Origin: Mizuhopecten yessoensis
Taxonomy: Eukaryota
Direction of reading: 5' to 3'
Assembly (NCBI RefSeq): GCF_002113885.1
Contig: NW_018408907.1
Span: forward strand, 647,907-711,906
DNA length: 64,000 bases
Each line of letters begins with the position of its first letter. Position 1 is the first letter of the stretch. The translations under genes and the position numbers were made by a program. Shown in pieces: positions 4,112-20,478 of this stretch. The notes below the pieces were generated by a model. That model was given only the letters and a program-made list of their open reading frames with translations. It did not search any database and was not told the DNA's origin.

Positions 4112-6262
4112 CATCCTACAGCAGTTATTATATAAGCTCCCATTGGCAGTACAAATACTACAGCAGTGAGCTCTCATTGACGATACATTCTACAGCAATG
4201 AGCTCCCATTAACAGTAAAAATAATACACCTAAGCTCCAATTGACAGTTCAAAAACAGCAGTGAGCTCTCAGTGACAGTATAAATCTTTCAGTAGTGAGC
4301 TCTCGTTGACAGTACAAATACTATAGCAGTGAGCTCTCATTGACAATACATGTACATTCTACAGCAGTGAGCTCCCATTAACAGTAAAAATAATACAGCT
4401 AAGCTCCCATTGACAGTTCAAAAAAAGCAGTGAGCTCTCAGTGATAGTACACATCCTACAGCAGTAAGCTTTCATTGACAGTACAAATCCTACAGCAGTA
4501 AGCTCTCATTGACAGTACCAATCCTACAGCATTGAGCGCTCACTGACAGTACACATACAAATCAAACAGCAGTGAGCTCTCATTGCTGTAGGATTTGTAT
4601 ATATACTGTCAGTGAGCTTTCAATGCTGTAGGATTTTTATGTATACTGTCAGTGAGCTCTCTATGCTTTAGGATTTGTATGTATCCTGTCAGTGAGCTCT
4701 CATTGCTGTATGATTTTTATGTGTACTGTCAGTGAAAGCTCACTGCTGTAGGATTTATATGTGTACTGTAATTGAAAGCTCAATGCTGTAGGATTAGTAT
4801 GTATACTGTCAGTGAGCTCTCTATGCTTTAGGATTTGTATGTACACTGTCAGTGAGCTTTCAATGCTGTAGGATTTATATGCGTACTGTAAGTGAAAGCT
4901 CACTGCTGTAGTATTTGTACTGCCAATGGGAGCTTAGCTGTAGGATTTGTACTGTCAATGAGATCTCACTGCTGTATGATTTATATGTGTACTGTAATTG
5001 AAAGCTCAATGCTGTAGGATTTTTATGTATACTGTCAGAGAGCTCTCAATGCTGTAAGATTTGTATGTGTACTGTCAGTGAGATCTCAATGCTGTAGGAT
5101 TGGTATGTATACTGTCAGTGAGCTCTCCATGCTGTAGGATTTGTACTGTCAATGAATGAGAGCTTATAGTCACTATTGTAATATTTGCACTGTCAAAGAG
5201 AGCATATATTATATATATATATATGTACTGCTGATCAAGTATCATAAAGGATTTGTACTGTCAATGAGACCTCTCTGCTGTACGATTTGTACTGTCAATG
5301 AGAGTTCATTGCTGTAGGATTTGTACTGTCAATGAGATCTCACTGCTGTATGATTTGTACTGTCAATGAGAGGTCACTGCTGTATGATTTGTAATGTCAA
5401 TGAGAGCTTACTGCTGTAGGATTTGTATGTGTTCTGTCAGTGAGCTCTCTATGCTTTAGGATTTGTATGTACACTGTCAGTGAGCTTTCAATGCTGTAGG
5501 ATTTATACTGTCAATGGGAGCTCTGTAGGATTTGTATGTACACTGTCAGTGAGCTTTCAATGCTGTAGGATTGGTACTGTCAATGAGACCTCTCTGCTGT
5601 ACGATTTGTACTGTCAATGAGAGATCACTGCTGTATGATTTATATGTGTACTGTAATTGAAAGCTCAATGCTGTAGGATTGGTACTGTCAATGAGATCTC
5701 ACTGCTGTATGATTTTTATGTGTACTGTCAGTGAGATCTCAATGCTGTAGGATTTTTATGTATACTGTCAGTGAGCTTGCAATGCTGTAGGATTAGTATG
5801 TATACTGTCAATGAGCTCTCATTGCTGTATGATTTGTATGTATACTGTAAGTGAGCTCTCACTGTTGTATGATTTGTATGTATACTGTAAGTGAGCTCTC
5901 ACTGTTGTATGATTTGTATGTATACTGTAAGTGAGCTCTCACTGCTGTATGATTTTTATGTGTACTGTCAGTGAAATCTCACTGCTGTATGATTTGTAAT
6001 GTCAATGAGAGCTCGCTGCTGTAGGATATGTGCTGTAAATGGGAGCTCACTGCTGTAGGATTTGTACAAATCCTACAGCATTGAGAGCTCACTGACAGTA
6101 CACATAAAAATCATACAGCAGTGAGAGCTCACTGACAGTATACATACAAATCCTACAGCATTGAGAGCTCATGCACTGACAGAACACATACAAATCCTAC
6201 AGCATTGAGAGCTCACTGACAGTACACATACAAATCATACAGCAGTGAGCTTTCCCTGACAT
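4112..6262. repeat. 34/40-bp minisatellite array with inverted central block
   Basis: Monomer CCTACAGCAGTGAGCTCTCATTGACAGTAC(ATAC)AAAT runs forward at ~4112-4577 and 6066-6262, and reverse-complement at ~4578-6065. Confidence 0.95.
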
Positions 6263-7107
6263 TGAAAATACTTAAGAATTGAGCTCTTGTTGACGGTATG
6301 AAATACTAAATACCACAGCAGTTATCAAAAACTACAGGGAATGATATAATGTAATTTCTTATGATCTAAGGGCAATGATTGGTTTCCCAAATTGTATGAA
6401 TATATACTTCTTTCCCTGAGGGCGTATGGGATTATACGGTATTTGTTGGTCCTTTCCACTTGATCAGGTATGCACTGTGTATCTATTGTTATATAGAAAC
6501 TCAAACCCATGTTTTCTATCATGTGACATTTGAACATTATCAGATGTTTATGTCAACAACCTGTTAATTTCCCCTCAATTTTTTTAAATATTTATCTCTT
6601 CATCATTTATAGACCTAGATTTATTTCTACAAAGTATAGAATGTTTTGGTCATTTACTTAAGCCCAACAACCAGCTACTGAAATATTTTAGGGATATTGT
6701 ATTAAGTCTGCAGTTGCTCAAAACTGCAGCCTGCAGGCAGCGCTACTCAAAATGATCCTCTTAAGATGAAAATAAAAAAATAAAAACCATTGTAATCATT
6801 CACGATTTTTCAAAAAAAAATATCTATATACAATCTCATGGTTTATTTCTCTTTTTCCCTGAAAACATTCCTTCTATTAATTTTTAACCAATTTTTAAAT
6901 GCTACACTTATTTAAGTTAACTGTACCAAACAATTCCGCTAAATCCACTTTTGCATCTGTGAGTGTATTATACAAGAATGCTTTTCAGATGCTAATTAAC
7001 TCAATCATAGATACACAGATGTTAATAAAAATTGCATCGACATATTAAAGATGGCCATCACATATTTGTACAAGTTGACAATTAAACCGATACTAAAAGC
7101 TTTTTCT

Positions 7108-7162
7108 GGCCCTAAATGACCATAGTTGTTGATAGACCGTTAAACTCAAATAAACAAACAAA
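7108..7162 (+). mobile_element. SINE 3' tail fragment
   Basis: CCTAAATGACCATAGTTGTTGATAGACCGTTAAAC followed by (AAAC)n; same tail as the SINEs ending near 13925 and 40863. Confidence 0.7.
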
Positions 7163-7535
7163 TTCATGATTAGATTTCCAGTCAAACCAAAATTCAACAA
7201 CCCTATTCTTTGTAAGCTATTTATATATAAATGTATGTGTTCATGGTCATTCTCATGTCAGCCATCTTAAATTTTAGACTTATCCGAAAAAATAACACCT
7301 AATTAGCCTGAAGCATCTTAAAGGATCATAATAAACCTCACACTTTTTGAGAAAAAGTTTGAAAATACAGTTGTTGATACAAAACAAAATACCCACAAAT
7401 GATGTTCAATTTCCAAATAACCCATAAATAACAACTATAGCACTTTATCAATAGGTAAAGATGACCAGGACAATGTCGTCTTGCTGGGTTTATCGGCTTT
7501 AATCAAAATGACAGTGATTAGTTTCAACCCATTAA

Positions 7536-8167
7536 AGGGGCTAGTCGGGGAAAAAATTACAAAATAAATGGGTCTAAATGCGTTCTCTGGCCTTCCAAAA
7601 GTTATACCATGGCAATATGATGGTCGAGTTCTGCTTGCAATGTCCAGTTTTGACCACTGAAATCTTGGGGAAGCCCCGCGTAAATTTAGCACAGATCTAT
7701 TTATATATGTCACATGGTTGTTTCAAAAGTGAGGCAGTGAAGATAACAACAATAACATGCCGTCATGTGCCATGTAAGACAAGACAGCAATACTATATGT
7801 AAATAATTGTTTTCAAAGGTCAGGTATAATGCAAAGGTAGTATTCCTACCTATATGTTGTTGTTATATATAACGGTATTGATACCTCGTGCCTGTCATGA
7901 CTTTCGCATGCATCTTTTTCTTTCGACGCGATGTTTACATTTGGCCTTGTTGATGACGCGCGTGCGGTAATATTACATCACTGATCTGGGTCAATTGAGA
8001 GTTTTAGACTGTAGCGTGACATTTAGGATTTCTTTAATATAATTATATTTTTTACTCTTAGGGAGTGAATTTCAGCAAAATTTGAATCGGTATATTTCAT
8101 AAGAAGGTATTTTAAACATGTGTATGCCATTTTAGCAAATATGACATTTTTTCCCCGACCAGTCCCT
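7536..8167. mobile_element. Kolobok-like MITE
   Basis: TTAA on both flanks (7532-7535, 8168-8171); TIRs AGGGGCTAGTCGGGGAAAAAA / TTTTTTCCCCGACCAGTCCCT with RR...YY termini. Confidence 0.85.
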
Positions 8168-8547
8168 TTAAATGTGTCGTCATAAGGACATTGGATCTCC
8201 CGCTCCCAGTATTAACTACAACACTTGGTAAACTCATTGCCCCTCAACTTTTTTCAATATAATTCCTTTCATTTTTTCGGCTAAGTCAATCTGGCACACA
8301 CTGAGAGGTTCAATTTTTTTGTATTTTCAAGATGGACTAGCTATACCGCCATCCCAGATTGAGGGCCAATTAATTTGCATCAACCCAATCCTTCCAAGTT
8401 TTGCTAACACTAACGGAACTTGAGAAGTGGATTAAAATGTGATTTTAAGGACGGCAACTTTTGTCAACTATATAAGATTTTGGAGGAAAATAGCTACATG
8501 ATGTAGCTATAGAGTTATCGGTATGTTAGATTTTAATTGCACGTCAT

Positions 8548-8651
8548 CTGTAGGATTACGGTTCCCACTAGAGGGAATTTCCCTTTAGCTCAGTGGTTGA
8601 GTGTCCGACTAGGAAGTCATGCAGGAATTCACTCAACTCTCTCCTGTTACA
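8548..8651 (+). mobile_element. tRNA-containing solo-LTR-like element (degenerate)
   Basis: TGTAGG...A-box-like TAGCTCAGTGG...CTCTCCTGTTACA; the 3' end matches the element at 14170-14307. Confidence 0.5.
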
Positions 8652-8719
8652 CCTGTACTTCAGCTAGGTGCAAACAGACAGGAAAAGAGCTTTAATTTAT
8701 TCTTATTTGGCCTTATTAA

Positions 8720-8802
8720 CCCTTTCACCCCTGTAGACCATAATGGACTCATCCAGATCAAAGCATGTTATTGTCTACTAAAGGTACATGGGGGAGAAAG
8801 GG
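8720..8802 (+). mobile_element. 83-bp piggyBac-like micro-MITE
   Basis: TTAA|CCCTTTC...GAAAGGG|TTAA; homologous copy in reverse orientation at 33844-33926. Confidence 0.85.
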
Positions 8803-8863
8803 TTAAACTGGCCTCATTAGTACACAGCTACTCCATCTGAGTTTATTAGCATGTTATATACTA

Positions 8864-9454
8864 CTGTGACGGTACCCAAATCGAGACACTTGACGGAAAA
8901 AGTCACAAGAAATTTGCATGCTGTGCAAAGAAGTATTTTCAAATTGAAAATATTGATTTAAAGATGCTAATATACCAATAAAACATTATATGAACATTAT
9001 TTACTGCCACTTATGGTTACAATCACAGTTTTAGTTTGTAAATAATGACGAAAATTAAATTTTTGCATGTGATTTTTCACAATCCTACTATTTCACAACT
9101 AATGGTAGTTCGGAAAAGAAATTCATTCAGAATGACCATTAATTGACTCTTAAAAATTCCAAAGATATGCCATGTTCTGCTAAATACTTTTTTTTAAATA
9201 TTCAAATATAAGCCAAAACTGGTAAGGGTGTCCCGATTTGGGTACAGCTACACCTGTTTCTTGATTACGTAACTATGACTATATTTTCGGGTTTATTTAT
9301 AGAACCATGCACCGGATATATCAACTTGTTATCAAAATGAAAAGATAATGATATCTATTTAGGAAGTGAAAAAAATTTACTGGGGATCGGTAGTCTACTA
9401 TGGTATGAAATACATCAAATTCAATATTTCACTAAAAAAAATCCCAATTTGGGT
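8864..9454. mobile_element. TIR element (MITE), right end truncated
   Basis: Left end TA|CTGTGACGGTACCCAAATCGAGAC; inverted copies GTCCCGATTTGGGTAC (~9229) and ATCCCAATTTGGGTA (~9441), the latter running into the next element. Confidence 0.6.
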
Positions 9455-10933
9455 AGAGCAATGGAGGCAGTTATCGACAGTCTAAGCTTCAAATTTGTTT
9501 TTCCAGTTCACCGTTTTGCGTAAGTTATTTTATGATGGCATTTCGAAGAAGTCGGGAAACGTTCTCTATTTCATCATCTGCAATAAACGTACATGTGACG
9601 AATCGCGGGAGAAATCATTGTTTTGTTGGCGTTAATGACAGGGGTAGTTATCGACAGGTGGAGGCAGTTATCGACAGCTAAGTTAAAATGTTAATTATTT
9701 CTATTATTAATCTCTAATAATACATTCATTTGTTCTGACGTGTGTCCAATTGCTTAAAAAAGGTATAAACATGTCAAGTGATATGTTAAGTCATAAATGT
9801 AAACAAACACGCTCCCTTTTCTGCACGCATGCACAAACAGTCACCGTCACAGCATTTTGATCAAACACATTTTCTGGTTCCCTTTCAATATGGTGTCCCA
9901 CCCCAATTTCATATTATTTTGATCCCCAGTGATGCATTCCAACAGCCCAAAAGTTTTGAATTATGATGCATTTATCCTACAATGATAGAGATCAGAAATT
10001 TAATTCAAGAAAACATAATTGAATCTTCTTGAAATAATCATTGTGGAAATGTTTTTAGGTTCTTAATGTTCACAAGATAATTAGTTATATACCTCCTGCC
10101 TAACAGAACAATTTTCATCAACATTTTATCTATGTAATTGATTACTTTTCAATATATATTATATTCTGGATATATATGACTGCAGTGTCTTCAAATATTG
10201 ATATTTTTCATAATTTGTAATTGCAGTTTATATTGAGCATATTTACAAGACTTATCTACATGGATTTTATTGAGAAATTTGGATTTTTTAGTATTTTAGT
10301 ATGCTTGTAAAGTTATGTCTGTTTACTGGATAGACTTTAGCATACTATTGTTGTCGGGTACATGTTCTCACCTTTCACAATTCACGATATATATATATAT
10401 TGAAATCATACAGGCAACTTTGAAGTACAAGTCATTCATAAAAATATGCTTTTAATGGATAAAACAAAAATTAATTGGTATTTTTTTACATACTGTCGAT
10501 AACTACCTCCGATCCTCAAATTGCGGCAGTTATCGACAACCCTATTTCCGACCTTAACAATACCCTGGATGTAGATAATACGCTGACAAACGTTGCAGAC
10601 GCTTCATGAGTGAAGTTGGATTACACCATTATGTGACAAATATTTCAGAAAAAAATGTCATCAAAATTCGATGTGCCAAACATATCTTATCGGGGCCCGT
10701 AAGGGAGGTTTAAAAACAGGATCGATTCTTCTCTTTGGAAAAAAAAAGTTCAAAAAATTTGTTTAACCGGTGTTGTCTGAATGGAACGGTTCCGAGGGAT
10801 TCCGAAAAAGGTAAGTGTACCTATCAAAAACACTGAGTGTCTGAAAAACGGTTCGTAATCGATCCAAACGAGATGAATAGAACCGGGGGCCGATAATACC
10901 CCACTGTCGATAACACCCTCCGTTGCTCTACTG
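9453..10933. mobile_element. Non-autonomous DNA transposon, Tc1/mariner-like termini
   Basis: TIRs GTAGAGCAATGGAGGCAGTTATCGACAG / CTGTCGATAACACCCTCCGTTGCTCTACTG|TA; subterminal GTTATCGACA motifs at ~9470, 9647, 9668, 10529 and inverted at ~10493, 10904. Confidence 0.85.
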
Positions 10934-11803
10934 TAATGTTAACCTCTCTGTTTTGTAACCTAACAGGCGATTAATTAACTGGGAATGAAATATACATTTA
11001 ATTGCCAAATTCTAGTTAGAAATATGCACTCGGTGCATGGTGAAACAGTGATGCTACACACAGTAAAACCTTAACATTTGTACACAAATGTGTTGTATTG
11101 ATATTTTATAGTGTAGGCAATAACTACCTAGCCACTCTCATATAAATTATACATACACATATAAACACATGTCCCATGTAGCGTGTGTCGAATGAGGTCA
11201 CGCTCACTAGCCTACTACTGTGGACAATTGACCGTGGGCTACTGTTGGCTACTGTGATAAGGTTCTCAAAAGTACATTTACACGTCAAAGATAATGATAG
11301 GCTAACTAGGTCCAATTCATAACAATCTTGAAGATCGAATATTATTTGATTATAATGTGTGACGCTAAATAGGTCATATATATATAACAAACATGTAACT
11401 GTTAGGCCTGATTTAGACGAGCGAAATCTTTACACACAACGACACGTGAAAAGTATAGGATGAATGGATCGAGATGATTTCGAAATAATGTTCCGGCTCG
11501 AACAGGATAGGTAATAATATTCACAAAGTAACCTCACACGGATCCAAGGGATACCTGCATGAGTGTTGATTAGGCTACACGTACGTTTGTTTACAAAACA
11601 CCGGCACACACCTAGCGAACTTCTTCACGCTTGACCTGCCAGGGCTTTGCCGTGTACATTCTCAATTAAAATGTTCATCCAAAGATTCGAGAGTATTACA
11701 GATAGAAAAAAGTGGTGACTAAGCAAAAGAAGAAACTCTAATAACGTGACGTAGACATTAACGACAGACACTACTTCTCAGCCATTTGAGCACGCGTTCT
11801 TAC

Positions 11804-11819
11804 CTTTCGCTTTCTCCAT
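11804..11819 (-). CDS. Probable first coding exon (MEKAK..., phase 1) of an unidentified minus-strand gene
   Basis: Minus strand CAAC-ATGGAGAAAGCGAAAG|GTAAGA: good start context and strong donor, within a CpG-rich region. An alternative upstream ATG at 11826 would give MTTWRKRK, phase 0. Confidence 0.5.
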
Positions 11820-12050
11820 GTTGTCATTCTGCTGTCGTTACTGCGCATGCCGCTCCAACCGTAAACAATCACCCACCCGTGGCCATGTATTGAACAGGTT
11901 CGCGGGGCCTGTACATTGGAATCCCAACTCACACACGAGTTTGAGCTTCATTTTATCACCAAAGTGACGAAAGAATAATAAAAAATAGTTATAAAAAATA
12001 CACGTCACTCTGTCAACACTCGACAACTTTGTGACGGGGCCGCGGTTTGT
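11820..12050 (-). promoter_or_regulatory. Probable housekeeping-type promoter / 5'UTR
   Basis: Locally CpG-rich; NRF1-like TGCGCATGC at ~11842 just upstream of the ATG/donor; CRE-like CACGTCA at 12001. Confidence 0.45.
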
Positions 12051-12255
12051 TTGTTTTGGAATTTGCGTGTAAGAGATAGGGAGAATAAAATAAAAGTTAG
12101 ATTAAGTACAAATATACAGAAACAGATATAAGATAAATCGCGTTTCTATCTTTAGTCTTTACTGTACCAATCAGGTGTAACTTTGAAAATTGAATTATAT
12201 AACTATGGTTTATTACTGAAGTGTCCCAATTCGGTTGAGTGATCTTATGTCGTAC

Positions 12256-12279
12256 CGCGGAATTAGATTAGAATCCGTG
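12256..12279. mobile_element. P-element-like excision footprint (24 bp)
   Basis: GTCGTAC|CGCGGAATTAGATTAGAATCCGTG|GTCGTAC; 7-bp direct repeat on both flanks. Confidence 0.7.
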
Positions 12280-12515
12280 GTCGTACTTTGACGTCAATCA
12301 TCCAACTTGATCAGGTCATTGTGACCTATTTTTCAATGTTTGACGTAAACTATTAGAAGGTAGGCTGGTCATGGGATTTAGAAATACAGTGCTGTTTTAC
12401 GTTATTTGGTCACTGTGACCGAACTTCAAAAATTTCGGCCTACAGAATTAAAAATTGTCATCGGGTTCAGAACAGAACTTAAAACTGTAAGTTTGCCTTA
12501 CAAGTTCACTGTAAC

Positions 12516-12550
12516 CACGGACTTAAATAACACGGACTTATAATTCCGTG
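12516..12550. mobile_element. P-element-like excision footprint (35 bp)
   Basis: CTGTAAC|CACGGACTTAAATAACACGGACTTATAATTCCGTG|CTGTAAC; 7-bp direct repeat on both flanks. Confidence 0.75.
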
Positions 12551-13565
12551 CTGTAACCTACTTTAGACATTTTACATACATTACTTAAAAAAATGTGATC
12601 GGTGATTTATATTCTACAATATATTTTATGTTGCGCTTCTTAGATTCAGCTTCGAGAAATCACTCTTGAAGGAGAAATCGTCACTGGCAGCCATTACATT
12701 ATAATACAGAGAAAAAAGGCAAGGTTTTCGTTTAAACTCCGTTTTTTCTAGATGGTTAATTTTTAATCGGTTCAGTGACTTAAATTCTACAATATTTTTC
12801 TTCTGAGATATCGTCTTCATAAAATATTTTGAATACTAATTGACATACCGTAATAAAGTTTTAAGAGAATAGGACGTTTTCACGATAAAGTCTTAACAGC
12901 ATCGAAATGAGCATTTTATTCACTTTACACCTATTTGTTAGTTGTGTAACTTAAAGCTTATACTTTGACACTCGTACCTGACCCAAGTTACCCCTGAGGG
13001 AAGGTCACTACAGGTGTGAAGGTGACTTACCAGTGAGGAGATCTTACGGGAGCCGAACTAAGGGAGGCAGGTGCGGGTAGGGGTAAAAGCCTCAGGGGAT
13101 CGCGCGGTACTACTAATTGTAATCTTACCCCCCTGGCTAATTATAATTCTCGATGAAGGTTCACGACATATTGACATACCCTGCCAAATTCACACCTGAA
13201 CTCGTCACAGGGGAACAATTATAATGTGTATGTATACTCACTAATTAGTCGCCCTATGATTAATCGCTGTTTACTAATCGTTAAAAAAATGGATGTTAAA
13301 CGTGAACGAGTCAAAACACAACGTCTCATTATATATACAGATTTAATACATGTAATTCGTGACCAAGTCGGATTATCCACTGCATGATCGTAGGAAGCGG
13401 CTTATGTGGGAACCACCCTGCGGAATTAGGAATTTGCGTTTATGCCCTCTACATGGGGACACAAACGCGACCAAAATAAATCTGAGGCACCCTTGTAATA
13501 TTTCGGATCTTTAACTTTCTCTCTACTTCTGTTATTTCCTAGAGCCTTGCTTGGCAGTGCCACAC

Positions 13566-13925
13566 TTCTGGCTTTAGTGTTGAGCGTTCGCCAAGGTGGG
13601 AAGGCAATGGTTTCTGTCCTCAGGCTGAGACACCAAAGTCCTTAAAATGGTAGTTGCTATTCCATGCTTAACGTTCAGCATTTAGGGTAATGGCAACGAC
13701 TGGTTCACCCGTTGTCAGTATGATGTGATCGGGTGGATTGTAATACTTGGTGCTTTCAGCATGGTATTTCAGTGAGATGGCACTTTAAAATCGGCATCAG
13801 ATCCGCGCTATCACAAGGAAACAATTACATTCTGTACGCCAGCATACCCTGCCTCCGACACACATAAACAACACATGAAAGGCACATCCTAAAATGACCT
13901 TAGCGCTTCAAAGGACGTTAAATCC
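13566..13925 (+). mobile_element. tRNA-derived SINE with Meta-type central domain
   Basis: Degenerate tRNA head; AAAATGGTAGTTGCT...GACTGGTTCACCCGTTGTCAGTATGATGTGATCGGGTGG core; tail AAATGACCTTAGC...GGACGTTAAA. Confidence 0.75.
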
Positions 13926-14169
13926 TTTACTACTATCGTGACTGACAATCGGGCCAGGCTCTCGCTTGGTCATTTTTGTGAAGGTCAATCGGAACACGCT
14001 TGGCCATTTTCGTGCACTTTTGGGCAAGCGACGAAAAAGGCGAAGCTATCCGATTGTCGAGTCGCGTGATTCTGCCCTGACGGATGTAAATCAAACTGAA
14101 CACGCATTTGAACGTTTGCGTTTAATTAAATTGAAGTCGATTTTACATAAGTTCCTTTGTATTAACTCG

Positions 14170-14335
14170 TAACAGGAGTTGGGAAAAATGCACGTCTAGA
14201 TCGGGGTTCGAAGCTGGGACCCTCCTAACTCTAGACGGACGCTCTACCAATTGAGCTACCTGGTCACCGACGATCGACCCAGTCTACACAAATGTAGTTC
14301 CGCTACATTTCTCCTTCCTTAAATTAAGTCTTCGA
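14170..14335 (-). mobile_element. 3' LTR with embedded tRNA-like module plus polypurine tract (TRIM/Ajax-like non-autonomous LTR element)
   Basis: Minus strand: AAGGAAGGAGAAA|TGTAGCGG...GTAGCTCAATTGGTAGAGCG (A box)...CTTCGAACCCC (B box)...CTCCTGTTAC. Confidence 0.65.
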
Positions 14336-14759
14336 CCCCGATACTAAATCACTGTACATGTCGCAGGGATCTGAGAATTTGCTACTGTATGTTCGTTTGC
14401 TATTCTGATGGTTTGGGCTTGTTAAAGGTTTAGACCAACACTTGGTAGAATGCCACCCTAATGAAACACTAGTATATACATATGTATATATATGGGTCAA
14501 AGAAATAATATAGACGGTAAAATCCCATATAACACTGGATCCTAATGGAGGTATGTCCGTAGGATACGAATTACTTAAAATATTATATGGGGCAAAGAAG
14601 TAAATCCAACAGTGTGGACAAGTTTAGTTTGTCAAATTTTCGGAGCGACCGCTCACATATATAGAGCAGATCTAATTAAACCCCTTAAAACGTCTTATAT
14701 CACATCAATACATCAGTAAAGGGTCCAAACATAGCAGCCGTAACACATTCTCAAGTGCC

Positions 14760-17000
14760 TGTGGTACATTTCGACATATTCCGACTGTCATAGCAGATAT
14801 AAAAATCCGTGTCCTTGTATACGTATTGAAACAGAGACGTATATCAAACACTAGCAAGGAAAGTTTTAAAATGCATGCTAAAAAGTTTAATGCAAAGAAA
14901 CTGCCCGACAATTTCCTGGTAAATAGTGATGACCAACCATTAATCATGAATACAATTAATCGTATAGAGAATAAATTGTTTAATGTTAATGATGTAGATG
15001 GTTCATATGCAGATATTCAAGATTTTCTTCTACGTGAGATGGAGAAGTCTGGTACACGATATGCTGATAAGAAAAGCACTAGAAACATAAATAGAAAATC
15101 CCTATATAAGACACACTTGGATGATGTGCTACAACAAGCATGGGATAAGGTCAAGGTCAATGAAAGGTCATGGCTTGGATGTAATGTTTCAACAGCAGAG
15201 ATATATTGCATTGCTAGAAAGTCCTTTGACACTATTCATAGGCGGTATAAACGCCAATATCAGCAAAAGAAACAATCAGATCTGAATGAAAAAATATTTA
15301 ATAAAACTAATGGAAGGGATTTCTTGAAAGAAATTGGTAAACTAGGTATCACTGAGGACAGTAAACCTACGATTCCCTTTGAGGTTAAGGATGACCAAAG
15401 CATAGTACATCGAGATATCCCGTCAGTTATTGAACGTTGGAAAACGGACTACGAAAAGTTATTCTCCACTGATCACGGATCTGAGGCGTATAATCAAGCA
15501 CATTTTATGTCCATATGCAATGACTTGAAAACTGGTAATATATCTCCCGATACGAGTACGGATGTAGCCATGTTTAAAGCAAAAATAAATATTCAAGAGT
15601 TAATAGATGCAGTTGAATCGGCTAAAAATCATAAAGCCTCTGGCATTGACTGTATACCGGCGGAAGCTCTGAATACTCAATAATAAGTAAATGTTTCGAT
15701 AGCGGAGTCGTACCAGGTAAGTGGCAAGAAGGGATAATTAATCCCATAATCAAATCAAACAGTACTGACCCTCAGGTACCGTTAACTTACAGAGCAATAA
15801 CTCTTCAGTCTATCCCATGTAAAATTTATTGTAGTATTTTAAAAAATCGTTTAACAAAGTGGCTCGAAATGAATGGGAAATTGGCTGATGAACAAAATGG
15901 ATTCCGCAAAGGTCGCAGTTGTCGGTTGGGTTGTTTTATGGGTTGGATGTCTTGTGTATCCGAACAACGAATTGAAGTTTTAAGGTTGTGTTGTAAGTTA
16001 AAATCGGTGGATAATGACCGTATTCTGTACAAAGTTTATTCATGGTCCGCCAGGAAAGGTAAATCATGGGATGTAAAAGCTAAAAAAATTAGCAAGTAAG
16101 TTTGATATCGCCAATATTATTAATGACGCTGTAAATTCAACTAAATCCGTTATGTCAAAAATCAAACAGAAAATGTTCATCAAGGATGAAGAGACGTGGT
16201 TCTCCAGTCTTTGGTGTGATAAAGGTAACATTAACGGCAATACATTACGAACATACCGTTTATTCAAAAAAGATTTACAGCCGGAACATTACGTCACCAC
16301 TTTAATGAAAATCCACTTTTTATGTGAATGTAACCTATATGTCGACCTTTGAGTCCCTCTGTTTGAAAGAGCAAGTAGTTTAGATCAATCATTCATTTCT
16401 ATGGACCATAACGAACAATTTCTTTTTTCTTATGAATGAAGAATCGCTTCAACCTATCTTAGCGAAGTCAGTTTTCCTTTTTATGAAAAGGAGACGTGGT
16501 AGTATTTAAAACTTGATATGCATTTTAGTTTTTTTATGACTATATACCTCGTAATATATGGTTCATATTATTGCTTTTAGTAGGCAGCATTACGACACTT
16601 TCACCATTTACTATAATTCAGTTTTAATGATTTTAGTAAATCTAATGTATGTATTTTATATGTATTTGATGTGCTAGTAATTGCCAATCCTCGAGGTCCC
16701 GATGGTGGGGGAGGGGCGACTTGTCGGTAGGGATTGGTCAAACCACTGTCGCTCTTCTCCCACCATCGGATCCTAAGCATTCATTCATTTTTTATGTTAT
16801 GTACAGTGTAATATATGATTCTTTTTATTGAGAATCATTAATAGATTCTATGTTTTAATATATATAAATTTTAAGTAGTGTCTCGTAAAGCAGTATGGCT
16901 GGGCATATTTTGCATATGGGTATTTTTATCATGTAAGTGATGTGTTATGTAAAATATGTGTGACACTTAAATAAAATATTTTATTATTATTATTATTATG
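14760..17000 (+). mobile_element. Decayed non-LTR retrotransposon (RTE-X/CR1-like), internally deleted
   Basis: KASGIDCIPAEAL, YRAITLQSIPCKIY and DEQNGFRKGRSC (RT N-terminal motifs); C-terminal LRTYRLFK...HFLCEC; stops and frameshifts; AATAAA plus (TTA)n tail near 16970-17000. Confidence 0.9.
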
Positions 17001-18585
17001 TATTTACTATATCTTCCCCGTTTTCGGGCCAGATACTATCGTCAAATCAAATGACATGTGAGATAAGGCAGAGTAATGAGAATATATATATGTGTATTTT
17101 TATTATGTAAGTGATGTGTTATGTAAAATATGTGTGACACTTAAATAAAATATGTTATTATTATTCATATATATTACAAACATTTGCAACTTGCTCTTTA
17201 CCTTACCATTGGCAGGGATGTGTAGTGTTACCGGATGTCATATCGCGAGTTACGCTTCACCTGCGCCATATTGGATATACGGTTCACTACGTTCAAAAAT
17301 CCTGTCCTGTTCAGAACATAATATTAATTATGCAATGAGGAAACATCGAAGATCAACGCAATATTAAACCCGTAGCTAGCTGAGATTTCCATGCGGTTTG
17401 GGAGTGCTACATTGAATGTAAACACCAAGCATCGAAAGATTGCACGTCGTGGCTGTGTTTACGTATCGGGATTGATTCTGGCTTCAGGAGAACACAANAC
17501 GAACAATTTCTTTTTTCTTATGAATGAAGAATCGCTTCAACCTATCTTAGCGAAGTCAGTTTTCCTTTTTATGAAAAGGAGACGTGGTAGTATTTAAAAC
17601 TTGATATGCATTTTAGTTTTTTTATGACTATATACCTCGTAATATATGGTTCATATTATTGCTTTTAGTAGGCAGCATTACGACACTTTCACCATTTACT
17701 ATAATTCAGTTTTAATGATTTTAGTAAATCTAATGTATGTATTTTATATGTATTTGATGTGCTAGTAATTGCCAATCCTCGAGGTCCCGATGGTGGGGGA
17801 GGGGCGACTTGTCGGTAGGGATTGGTCAAACCACTGTCGCTCTTCTCCCACCATCGGATCCTAAGCATTCATTCATTTTTTATGTTATGTACAGTGTAAT
17901 ATATGATTCTTTTTATTGAGAATCATTAATAGATTCTATGTTTTAATATATATAAATTTTAAGTAGTGTCTCGTAAAGCAGTATGGCTGGGCATATTTTG
18001 CATATGGGTATTTTTATCATGTAAGTGATGTGTTATGTAAAATATGTGTGACACTTAAATAAAATATTTTATTATTATTATTATTATGTATTTACTATAT
18101 CTTCCCCGTTTTCGGGCCAGATACTATCGTCAAATCAAATGACATGTGAGATAAGGCAGAGTAATGAGAATATATATATGTGTATTTTTATTATGTAAGT
18201 GATGTGTTATGTAAAATATGTGTGACACTTAAATAAAATATGTTATTATTATTCATATATATTACAAACATTTGCAACTTGCTCTTTACCTTACCATTGG
18301 CAGGGATGTGTAGTGTTACCGGATGTCATATCGCGAGTTACGCTTCACCTGCGCCATATTGGATATACGGTTCACTACGTTCAAAAATCCTGTCCTGTTC
18401 AGAACATAATATAAATTATGCAATGAGGAAACATCGAAGATCAACGCAATATTAAACCCGTAGCTAGCTGAGATTTCCATGCGGTTTGGGAGTGCTACAT
18501 TGAATGTAAACACCAAGCATCGAAAGATTGCACATCGTGGCTGTGTTTACGTATCGGGATTGATTCTGGCTTCAGGAGAACACAA
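16411..18585. repeat. 1087-bp near-identical tandem duplication split by a single N (likely assembly artefact)
   Basis: 16411-17497 matches 17499-18585 with two substitutions seen; N at 17498. Confidence 0.9.
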
Positions 18586-19133
18586 CTCCGGTTTTGTTCT
18601 TTAAACAATTTCAAAAATATCTTCAGATATGAATTATTTGATAATATTTTTAACAAGGTTCCTAAAAATATTGTTGTAACAATATTTACAAAGTTCAAAA
18701 AACTAAGCTCTGAAAATACAGTTTTGTTTAAGGATAATAAACAAGTTAAAATGGCGGCTGTGATGTGTGAGGGTTATTTTTCATGACACATTAGAACACG
18801 AACTCCTTTTTAATTCACTATTCAATTTCAAAAATATCTTCAGATATTGATTATTTGATAATATTTCTAACCATGTTCTTAAAATCTTAAAATGAGGTTG
18901 TTACAATACTTGCAATATTCAATAATTTAGCTCTGAAAATACTTTTTTTAAGGATAATAAACAAGTTAAAAGGGTCTGATGTGCGAGGGTGTTTTTTAAG
19001 ACAAATTAAAACACGAACTCCTTTTTAATTCATTATCTAATTTCAAAAACATCCTCAGATAGTTATTCAAACATAGTATTTCTAGCCAGGTTTTTCAAAT
19101 AAGTTTGATCATTGAGCTCCGAAAATACACTTT
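18579..19133. repeat. Degenerate ~215-bp tandem repeat, ~2.6 copies
   Basis: AACAC(G)AACTCC...TTTCAAAAATATCTTCAGAT...AAGGATAATAAACAAGTTAAAA starts at 18579, 18795 and 19010. Confidence 0.85.
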
Positions 19134-19674
19134 AAAATATAAAAGTTAAATTGGGGCTGTGATAAGTATCACAACGAAAATTTCTGTTCGTTGTAATGTG
19201 TACTTTGAAAGTAGATTTCCAAGATGTTGAATTGTAGTCCAAATATAAAATGTATTTAATAACTGTATCTAGGTCGGTGGGCGATTTCTGGGGTATCCTA
19301 AAATCTACCCGTACGGTCCGAGTCCTAGCTCCTAACTGATTACAAAACATGTAGAACAGTGATACATTGACAATTAACAAAATAAAGTTTATTTGATTGA
19401 CAGCTGTCACTTATCTCTCTATTCTGACTGGTGAGTACCCGAACAGGTAAGGCAATTAGCCTGTCCTTAAGTGTCATAATTGGTAAGTCCAGCTAATCTC
19501 ATTACGTAACATAATTGACTTGAAAGGTATAATGTAGAAGATGGACACCAATATTGCATGAGATAATCTTACGACAATGAATCAAAGAAGTTACATATAA
19601 CTACATCGAAAGTAACATATATTTACACATAGATGTTTTCTTAAATGGTACAAATGTTATTAAATAGCTTTTAG

Positions 19675-19708
19675 CACGGAATTAGATTTATTGTTATCTA
19701 AGTCCGTG
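19675..19708. mobile_element. P-element-like excision footprint (34 bp = 17+17)
   Basis: CTTTTAG|CACGGAATTAGATTTATTGTTATCTAAGTCCGTG|CTTTTAG; 7-bp direct repeat on both flanks. Confidence 0.8.
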
Positions 19709-20478
19709 CTTTTAGGTATGAAATTGTTACTGAACGAAATTAAATGGCGAAAGTTTGTAGGAGGAAATCCAAAACAATGAATGAGATGAAATGTTAAATT
19801 AATGTGCGAGGGTTAATTCCTTTCATGACACCGGCACTCCTTGACGTATTCAGATATAAATATATATATATGAGCCATACATCTTGGATAGGTAACATGT
19901 TGACACGAACTAACGAATACACGATCGAATTATCACAGGTAACACACTGACCAGACTATCGTCACAGGATCGATATCATTCGGCTTCGACATGTGCTTTT
20001 ATAATTAGCTGTCAAAATGATCACCTAGACCTTCCGCGTGATTGCGCAGCCGCAACCCAAGTCTCGCGGCGTTTCTTATTCCACTGCTTGCACATATATG
20101 ATCATCATGCGGGTTTTTGCGTAAGTTGCTAATCTCTGTAATATGTATGTCTCTGATTGAAAGACGCATATTGAATTATTCCAATTCTTGATCAAAATCT
20201 TCTTACACAAATAATTTGAAACCGTTCAGTATTTCAATGGACGTATAGTTCACGCCCCACCGATTTTAATCTTATGGACAATTGGGGATATTTATTCATA
20301 ATAAGGAACACATGTTTACATACTTAGAGAAATACCTGTGTATGTTATGTTAACAATGGATGGGCAATACACATTTAGGAATTTATTGTAGGGTGACCTG
20401 TGTAAGGTTAAATCCTAACAATATAGTGAATACGTTGTAGAGGTCTAAATGCTGTATAATCCATTCCTCACTAGTTCG

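Follow-up and report, generated by a model that had tools for sequence, protein, structure and literature searches.

We conclude that three short inserts in a 64,000-nt stretch of the genome of the bivalve Mizuhopecten yessoensis (contig NW_018408907.1, positions 647,907 to 711,906; hereafter the window) are most probably excision footprints of one P-superfamily cut-and-paste family, which would cut with a stagger of about 17 nt and leave tails that are then end-joined. We assign this reading a probability of about 0.85. A preliminary description of the window had already proposed a P-type transposon as the source, and in its favour we found long parental elements, variable junctions, a step in end retention at 17 nt and a link to P-type transposases. 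We regard the source as a new family of the P superfamily that has left a large natural store of footprints.

Three inserts in the window

All three mini-inserts reported in the preliminary description are present, each enclosed by two copies of a perfect 7-bp target site duplication (TSD). Positions are those of the window, and a strand is given for the inserts only:

12249-12255: left TSD of site 1, GTCGTAC, the same 7 bp as at 12280-12286
12256-12279, plus strand: footprint 1, 24 nt; 17 nt of end A (position 2 A>G) and, from the other end, about 6-7 nt (ATCCGTG)
12280-12286: right TSD of site 1, GTCGTAC
12509-12515: left TSD of site 2, CTGTAAC (GTTACAG when read from A to B)
12516-12550, A to B on the minus strand: footprint 2, 35 nt; 17 nt of end B, an 8-nt filler (CGGACTTA) and about 10 nt of end A
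12551-12557: right TSD of site 2, CTGTAAC
19668-19674: left TSD of site 3, CTTTTAG
19675-19708, plus strand: footprint 3, 34 nt; 14 nt of end A, a 3-nt filler (TAT) and 17 nt of end B
19709-19715: right TSD of site 3, CTTTTAG

Their make-up departs in two respects from what had been reported. End A is 17 nt long (CACGGAATTAGATTAGA) and not 14, and site 1 retains the full length, with a single A>G change; its junction was scored as 17 nt of A and 8 nt of B with an overlap of 1 nt. Likewise, the copy at 19675, previously taken for two 17-nt ends, consists of 14 nt of A, the 3-nt filler and 17 nt of B. On the other hand, the reverse orientation and the templated filler of the copy at 12516 stand, the filler being a copy of positions 3-10 of end B.

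Footprint 1 is free of indels in contigs from other individuals, and so is footprint 2 in the spanning contigs of runs X12, X16 and X9; in run X14 site 2 is covered by a shorter contig (12266-12628). Judging from the contigs, three other individuals carry both footprints; at sites 1 and 2, the reads and contigs of four other runs showed neither an empty allele nor a full one. Position 12526, which is A in the window, is G in all four of the other runs aligned there, and the B consensus is thereby restored.

The position of two inserts upstream of a putative promoter had been regarded as a sign of the promoter preference of P elements. We dropped this idea because the neighbouring DNA, from about 12,590 onward, is a high-copy repeat and no Pfam-recognisable ORF lies close by; no gene or promoter could be demonstrated there.

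A genome-wide archive of probable footprints

The abundance of these ends is far beyond chance. In the 988-Mb genome, the 14-nt end A gave 2,474 matches, against 5 for the reversed control, whereas the 17-nt ends A and B gave 681 and 301 matches, respectively (for B with the A/T filter only), against 0 for their controls. Nearly all sampled copies of end A sit in A-plus-B inserts of 13-40 nt, which vary in their centres and have 7-bp target duplications. When unselected matches to the 14-nt end were inspected, 14 of 15 proved to be such inserts, 19-35 nt long; their centres varied, and their 7-bp TSDs were mostly perfect. The TSD was perfect in 11 of the 18 footprints scanned, with NTnnnAN as the target motif. 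Insert lengths span 13 to about 48 nt, and the junctions, which include fillers and microhomologies, fall into dozens of types. The genome holds several thousand similar scars, short copies outnumbering long ones by roughly 100 to 1.

Long parental elements

Longer elements carrying these termini, on whose existence the preliminary description had made its reading depend, are present. About 70 copies of each end (74 of A and 69 of B, against 0 in the control) extend into a 29-bp imperfect terminal inverted repeat (TIR; CACGGAMTTAGATWASAGGGAWWGGCAAC) that begins with CA, end A starting with CACGGAATTAGATTAGA-GGGAAAGGCAAC and end B with CACGGACTTAGATAACA-GGGATTGGCAAC. At least 27 inverted A/B pairs bound elements of 0.8 to 14 kb, which form a graded series of internal deletions. 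A perfect 7-bp TSD flanks 12 of the approximately 18 long elements checked, and 4 more match at 6 of 7 positions. Furthermore, these TSDs share the NTnnnAN target motif with those of the footprints.

Junction classes and the 17-nt step

Junction classes were tallied by eye in listings of the first 100 matches. In about 168 footprints anchored by a complete 17-nt end A, end B measures exactly 17 nt in about 33% and 18-20 nt in about 4%, the extra bases always matching the next bases of the TIR; among the matches listed, none of these footprints retains more than 20 nt of B, though the TIR extends to 29 nt. Rare footprints outside this set keep up to about 23 nt. The limit at 17 nt is therefore not absolute.

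The main shortened classes are A17+B12, B17+A13 and B17+A12, together with the +8 and +7 classes. Pairing between the A at the 3' end of an intact 17-nt tail and T13, T14, T9 or T8 of the partner tail would be expected to yield these classes. Fillers often copy tail sequence, as at site 2 of the window. The commonest full-length class is A17+T+B17, with an extra T that is explained by neither end. Overall, the junction classes, microhomologies and templated fillers agree with published excision junctions of the Drosophila P element, which comprise blunt 17+17 joins, microhomologies of 1-3 nt and templated insertions (PMC2895639).

The step in retention and the shortened classes indicate indirectly that the 5' strand is cleaved about 17 nt inside the TIR, which would leave 17-nt 3' tails at the donor site. 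The staggered cut and the repair pathway that we infer would proceed as follows. On the 3' strand the transposase would cut at the boundary of the element, and on the 5' strand about 17 nt into each repeat, so that 17 nt of element sequence would stay on each donor flank as a single-stranded 3' tail. End joining of these two tails, which are not complementary, would place a microhomology or filler between at most 17 nt of A and at most 17 nt of B, with a copy of the TSD on either side.

The retained bases could also have been acquired through abortive gap repair, in which a flush or short-stagger excision is followed by repair synthesis that copies a short part of both ends off the sister chromatid, and then by joining. 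The footprints with 18-20 (rarely about 23) templated nt are in line with such a process, since bases beyond 17 nt must stem either from gap-repair synthesis or from an alternative cut, and so is the graded series of internally deleted long elements. However, abortive gap repair predicts smoothly distributed retention lengths, whereas we observed a pile-up at exactly 17 nt and an eight-fold drop beyond it. Moreover, among the matches listed, not one of the approximately 168 footprints retains 21-29 nt, and beyond this gap the next copies are elements of 795 bp or more. We consider this origin very unlikely.

Alternatively, the short copies might be self-propagating micro-MITEs, that is, units of 27-36 bp made of two half-TIRs with nothing in between, mobilised in trans and each generating its own 7-bp TSD. 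A few exact forms (29, 30, 27 and 35 nt) do recur at many unrelated sites, a TSD is found at every copy, and the large excess of short over long copies would fit as well. Yet no single form dominates: the termini are intact and the variation is concentrated in the centres, where we found the microhomologies, fillers of 1-14 nt and templated duplications that are typical of end joining. The recurrent classes are, in addition, exactly those predicted if the terminal A of a 17-nt tail pairs with a T of the partner tail. A duplex of 27-36 bp cannot be released by a 17-nt staggered cut, and P-type transposases require internal binding sites, which units of this size do not contain. In place of the homogeneous copies and uniform internal sequence that characterise MITEs, or of the single internal junction that the preliminary description had named as grounds for giving up its reading, the short copies display a spectrum of end-joining products. 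Mobile units of this kind are, in our opinion, improbable. If they did exist, they would be much smaller than any other mobile DNA known from eukaryotes, and the 29-, 30- and 35-nt forms would represent amplified lineages and not recurrent repair products.

P-type transposase genes near the termini

Excision by a P-type enzyme is further suggested by three neighbourhoods of gene and terminus, all in the expected orientation and one of them in another species. On contig C2226, P-type ORFs (locus L040) match the Pfam families PF21787 and PF21788, the latter a GTP-binding insertion, and a perfect long A end at position 8506 is followed 2.9 kb downstream by a P-type ORF in the same orientation. 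The nearest relative of this ORF is the gene on contig C660 (81% at the amino acid level), and a long B end lies 11.5 kb downstream of that gene and faces it. In Ylistrum balloti, a B-type end lies 4.9 kb downstream of an intact 927-aa homologue, which matches PF21787, PF21788 and PF21789. In the M. yessoensis genome, at least 35 long elements have termini that match the terminal 100 nt or so of this end, and an inner piece of it matches C660 only. By our estimate, chance would place about 0.01 long ends less than 12 kb from the three loci belonging to this clade; 2 were observed.

The homologues carry the name THAP9 in their source records, and the RNase H-like domain is split by a GTP-binding insertion domain (PF21787/PF21788/PF21789), as in P-type transposases. 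The genes on C2226 and C660 are damaged. Of the P/THAP9-type transposase that had been proposed, the P-type link is upheld by the neighbourhoods of gene and terminus, but the THAP domain was not detected: Pfam gave no match up to E 1 in the 927-aa protein, in its residues 1-200 or in the N-terminal part of L040. Divergence or a lost upstream exon could account for this.

A transposon of another or unknown superfamily, with a long stagger and only coincidentally close to P-like genes, would agree with the missing THAP domain. It would also agree with the facts that we recovered no complete autonomous copy, with both ends, a TSD and an intact transposase, and that no P-like match was found on the contig of any paired long element. 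Against such a coincidence stand the three correctly oriented neighbourhoods, the homology of the terminus between two species and the low number of long ends expected by chance. Moreover, a 7-bp TSD and a TIR of about 30 bp both suit the P superfamily. We judge this possibility extremely unlikely and retain the assignment to the P superfamily.

Other searches were less informative. A scan of all P-like loci recovered found no termini within about 1.5 kb of the genes, and loci L022, L024, L025 and L029 yielded no convincing TIRs. The homology between L033 and L035 stops where L035 enters (TAACCC)n, and no element boundary could be read there. A profile search of the genome with PF12017 (Tnp_P_element) returned 0 matches, its controls being equally silent. 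The search with L040 DNA was dominated by a nested high-copy foldback-like element, and the Ylistrum DNA that precedes the gene, like that separating it from the end, matched only other repeats. Homologues from Pecten maximus and Argopecten irradians (48-53% identical) are devoid of such termini within 10 kb and therefore belong to other P families.

Comparison with known P-superfamily elements

The 7-bp TSD lies within the 7-8 bp of the P superfamily, and the 29-bp TIRs conform to its repeats of tens of bp starting with CA. The 17-nt cut has been described for the Drosophila P transposase (PMC7776569), for which it is documented as a staggered cut and called atypical among cut-and-paste transposases. 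The P element of Drosophila and the family described here have in common a TIR of about 30 bp (29 bp here, 31 bp in D. melanogaster), termini that begin with CA and a transposase whose RNase H fold is split by a GTP-binding insertion domain. Their donor products are also alike, with up to 17 nt on each side of the junction between the TSDs and with blunt 17+17, 1-3-nt microhomology and templated-insert classes. On the other hand, the TSD is 7 bp here and 8 bp in Drosophila P. Unlike in Drosophila P, the two TIRs are not perfect copies of each other (three of their first 17 nt are mismatched), the THAP domain is undetected, and an extra T recurs at the 17|17 junction. Finally, the host is a bivalve and not a fruit fly, and the footprints are genomic fossils fixed in thousands, whereas those of Drosophila P are experimental products.

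Within the P superfamily, 7-bp TSDs like those found here are known from 1360 (Hoppel/ProtoP) and Galileo of Drosophila (PMC3698922). The literature searched contained no genome-wide footprint archive for either of them. The TIRs of Galileo and 1360 differ in length and sequence from those of the present family. Zebrafish Pdre2/THAP9 is, likewise, a non-insect P-like element with few coding and many internally deleted copies; it has 13-bp TIRs, distant sub-terminal repeats and 8-bp TSDs (PMC10983969), compared with 29-bp TIRs and 7-bp TSDs here, and 17-nt cleavage is cited in the passages searched for the Drosophila enzyme only.

We take the step at 17 nt as an indication that this stagger chemistry also operates in a mollusc, as the preliminary description had suggested, and in a distant P-like family with 7-bp TSDs and no detected THAP domain. 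Several thousand donor-site junctions are preserved in the bivalve genome, and they make up an extensive natural record of germline end joining between non-complementary 3' tails, covering microhomology choice, templated fillers and the recurrent additional T. They also show that cut-and-paste transposons of one family can leave about a hundred scars for each element that survives, and such scars add to the small-indel variation overlooked by repeat annotation. Moreover, direct biochemical tests could start from a defined pair, the intact 927-aa transposase of Ylistrum and the 29-bp ends.

The footprints are also clustered: among the 100 matches to the 14-nt end A listed, about 12 neighbour pairs lie less than 10 kb apart, compared with about 2.5 expected. 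Such clustering agrees with the local hopping known from P elements, and in Drosophila P insertions and scars likewise cluster locally.

Footprints in the window and across the genome

The preliminary description reported three short inserts in the window, each combining two distinct transposon termini (end A and end B) between target-site duplications (TSDs), and read them as excision scars, or footprints. Their coordinates and perfect 7-bp direct repeats proved exact on re-reading, and no longer element with footprint-type ends was found within the window. The site 2 filler, CGGACTTA, is a copy of nearby tail sequence.

Inserts in the window
Site 1: 12256-12279, 24 nt, perfect 7-bp direct repeat GTCGTAC on both sides
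Site 2: 12516-12550, 35 nt, perfect 7-bp direct repeat CTGTAAC on both sides
Site 3: 19675-19708, 34 nt, perfect 7-bp direct repeat CTTTTAG on both sides

The window corresponds to C5580:647907-711906 of the assembly (988 Mb, 82,659 contigs). We searched this assembly with 14 nt of end A (A14), which gave 2,474 matches genome-wide, compared with 5 for the reversed control. Close reading of 20 regions cut out around the first A14 matches showed that 14 of the 15 visible ones were 19-35-nt inserts of end A and the reverse complement of end B, with variable centres and mostly perfect 7-bp TSDs. A blind scan of 264 kb found 20 CACGG...CCGTG units of at most 45 nt, against 5 in the reversed sequence; the TSD had at most two mismatches in 18 of these units and was perfect in 11. 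Since about one third of footprints keep at least 14 nt of end A, we roughly estimate a genome total of 5,000-10,000. Some footprints, however, lie inside other repeats and were multiplied together with them (regions L003/L004; the 'CCCATA' and 'AATA' flank families), so that raw counts exceed independent events by roughly 15%.

The local clustering described for the window is real. Among the first 100 of the 2,474 A14 matches, about 12 neighbour pairs lay less than 10 kb apart, compared with about 2.5 expected, and 4 of the 20 regions held a second footprint less than 4 kb away. The proposed preference for promoters lacks support: neither a gene nor an ORF recognised by Pfam was found near the footprints, and the adjoining DNA from ~12,590 on is a high-copy repeat whose depth in contigs of other individuals exceeds that of the flanks 10-50-fold.

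Three other individuals, from different studies, have contigs that cover 11700-12628 with no indel. Footprints 1 and 2 are thus common to these individuals, and this comparison, with no empty or full allele, is neutral on excision. Position 12526 is A in the assembly and G in the contigs of all four other runs, which restores the end B consensus (TTAGAT); the assembly is either wrong here or carries a private allele. The repeat at 12590-13100, which immediately follows footprint 2, has many joints and loose ends in other individuals' contigs.

Long parent elements

Longer elements with the footprint termini, as the excision reading anticipated, do exist. About 9% of the listed matches to 17 nt of end B (B17) run on as GGGATTGGCAAC and not into end A, and targeted pattern searches of the genome returned 69 long B ends and 74 long A ends (controls 0). 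The terminal inverted repeat (TIR) so defined is imperfect and 29 bp long. By matching coordinates and strands of the long ends, we obtained at least 27 A/B pairs in inverted orientation, spaced 0.8-14 kb apart and mostly 3.4-5.7 kb.

Examples of long elements (A/B pairs)
C370:914955-919345
C3117:28796-32356
C5434:176856-180253
C4099:1044269-1049896
C2466:117507-131376

The 7 nt outside each end formed perfect 7-bp TSDs in 12 of about 18 pairs and matched at 6/7 in four more. Long elements and footprints also have in common the target motif NTnnnAN (T at position 2, A at position 6). Together, TSDs and motif show long elements and short inserts to be products of one insertion machinery. None of the contigs with paired long elements had a match homologous to P-superfamily transposase (P-like), and the pairs therefore appear non-autonomous.

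Long elements of different lengths on C4099, C5442, C5461 (at 282470) and C2268 have the common flank GTTATAT / ATATAAC; this group seems to be one insertion duplicated with its flanks, followed by internal deletions of differing extent. A tandem array at C5311:378259-378753, with about eleven 46-bp units each starting with a long-B-end variant (CACCGACTTAGATGGCAGGGGTTGGCAAC...), has the look of a satellite that arose from the terminal repeat of the transposon. At C1021:228665-233813, five copies of 17 nt of end A (A17) within 5 kb all run into one non-transposon sequence (CACCACCTTTATTCCACT); a local tandem duplication seems to have picked up a half-footprint or an element end.

Retention step and junctions

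We searched with all 17 nt of A plus any 18 nt, in two runs (final base A/T or G/C) against filter bias; of 681 matches together, the first 100 of each run were tallied by eye, so that retention and class counts are approximate. Among the matches listed, about 55 of ~168 A17-anchored footprints (33%) kept exactly 17 nt of B, 7 (4%) kept 18-20 nt, and none kept more than 20, though the TIR is 29 nt and the shortest long element 795 bp. In the 18-20-nt class, the additional bases always continued the TIR sequence (C, CC or CCC on the A-to-B strand). Retention of A had the same shape in the B17-anchored mirror (A/T filter only; A13 ~33, A12 12, A15 11, A17 ~13 and A19 one among the matches listed).

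An A17+GGG search found about 25 footprints with at least 20 nt of A, ~4% of those with at least 17; they often have 18-20 nt of B too, and C4752 maybe up to ~23. Limited repair synthesis off an intact copy before joining would give this pattern. As a source of the footprints in general, abortive gap repair without a long stagger is very unlikely, since it predicts a smooth length distribution and not a step.

Commonest junction classes
A17+T+B17, 35 nt: commonest full-length form, ~23 independent loci per 100 listed (G/C-ending search)
Blunt 17+17, 34 nt: among the commonest
A17+B12, 29 nt: among the commonest
A13+B17, 30 nt: among the commonest
27-nt form, joined via the 3-nt microhomology TTA: among the commonest

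The truncated classes are as expected if an intact 17-nt tail pairs, through the A at its 3' end, with a T in the other tail. Such pairing would produce B12 from T13, A13 and A12 from T14 and T13, and 8- and 7-nt classes from T9 and T8; all these classes were observed in the A17- and B17-anchored lists. Fillers, 1-14 nt long, are common, and many duplicate sequence from the tails close by (TTAGAT duplications; C657 with a 14-nt filler). The extra T in A17+T+B17 (for example C101:471853-471887) is supplied by neither end, and TT also recurs; our guess is that the base may be added without a template as the ends are joined, a possible repair-polymerase signature.

With variable centres, several junction classes, fillers and microhomology, the short copies have no uniform internal junction. 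That they are instead a self-mobilising micro-MITE is improbable, if slightly less so than abortive gap repair: their variation is confined to the centre, obeys end-joining rules and has no dominant form, and a 27-36-bp duplex is not releasable by a 17-nt stagger.

A transposase clade at the footprint ends

A few dozen P/THAP9-type transposase fragments were found in the genome. On C2226, a 595-aa ORF, a frameshift and a 243-aa ORF carry PF21787 and the P-specific GTP-binding insertion PF21788, and a perfect 35/35 long A end lies at C2226:8506, 2.9 kb upstream of this gene in the same orientation. Its nearest relative, C660:198927-202431 (81% aa, 91% nt identity), is faced by a long B end at C660:213502. 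With ~143 long ends in 988 Mb, we estimate that ~0.01 would be expected less than 12 kb from the clade's three loci; two were seen, each in the right orientation.

Among public sequences, the nearest full-length homologue comes from the scallop Ylistrum balloti: a 927-aa protein (PF21787, PF21788 and PF21789) encoded by an intact, intronless gene, with a B-type terminus 4.9 kb downstream, facing the gene. The terminal 93-104 nt of this end are 74-80% identical, starting exactly at the terminus, to at least 35 long B ends of M. yessoensis, while an inner piece matches C660 only (E 3e-36). These neighbourhoods tie one P/THAP9-type clade to the footprint ends; one end was seen at each gene locus, and at none of them a whole autonomous element flanked by a TSD. 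A THAP domain was undetectable with Pfam in the N-terminal 470 residues. That a non-P transposase made the footprints is the least likely of the alternatives: at three loci a P-type gene neighbours such a terminus, and the terminus is homologous between species, both of which contradict it.

Considering the long parents, the 17-nt step, the junction spectrum and the transposase neighbourhoods, the interpretation as P-type excision footprints is supported. Judged from sequence, this is a new P-superfamily family in scallops, with 7-bp TSDs, as in 1360 and Galileo (PMC3698922), and 29-bp TIRs. The 17-nt cut of P transposase has been reviewed (PMC7776569). Drosophila P{wa} excision yields the same product types as the scallop footprints: in the tabulation of Chan et al. 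(PMC2895639), ends meet bluntly as 17+17, join recurrently through 2-nt microhomologies or enclose templated insertions, in every case within '17-nucleotide non-complementary 3' overhangs'. The family's thousands of fossil footprints, with their retention step at 17 nt, are indirect but strong evidence that 17-nt staggered cleavage is conserved outside insects, in a mollusc.

Pecten maximus (L046:15086-15883) and Argopecten irradians (L047:14834-16874) both have an opposite-strand gene with a THAP9_C match 2 kb downstream of a full-length P-like gene (945-950 aa). CACGG termini are absent from this conserved gene pair in both species; it may represent another P family or a domesticated one. 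On C1987 (~99,900; L035:2440-2500), a copy of the C5342 P-like element with an internal deletion (91% identity) stops abruptly within a contig, at telomere-type (TAACCC)n repeats. The C2226 gene is itself interrupted by a nested high-copy element (L040:2820-3186 = C2226:13908-14274), followed by a tandem repeat; the element has at least 40 copies of 92-99% identity, and ~370 bp from each lies an inverted partner of 72-79% identity, an arrangement that resembles a foldback-like element with arms of ~366 bp.
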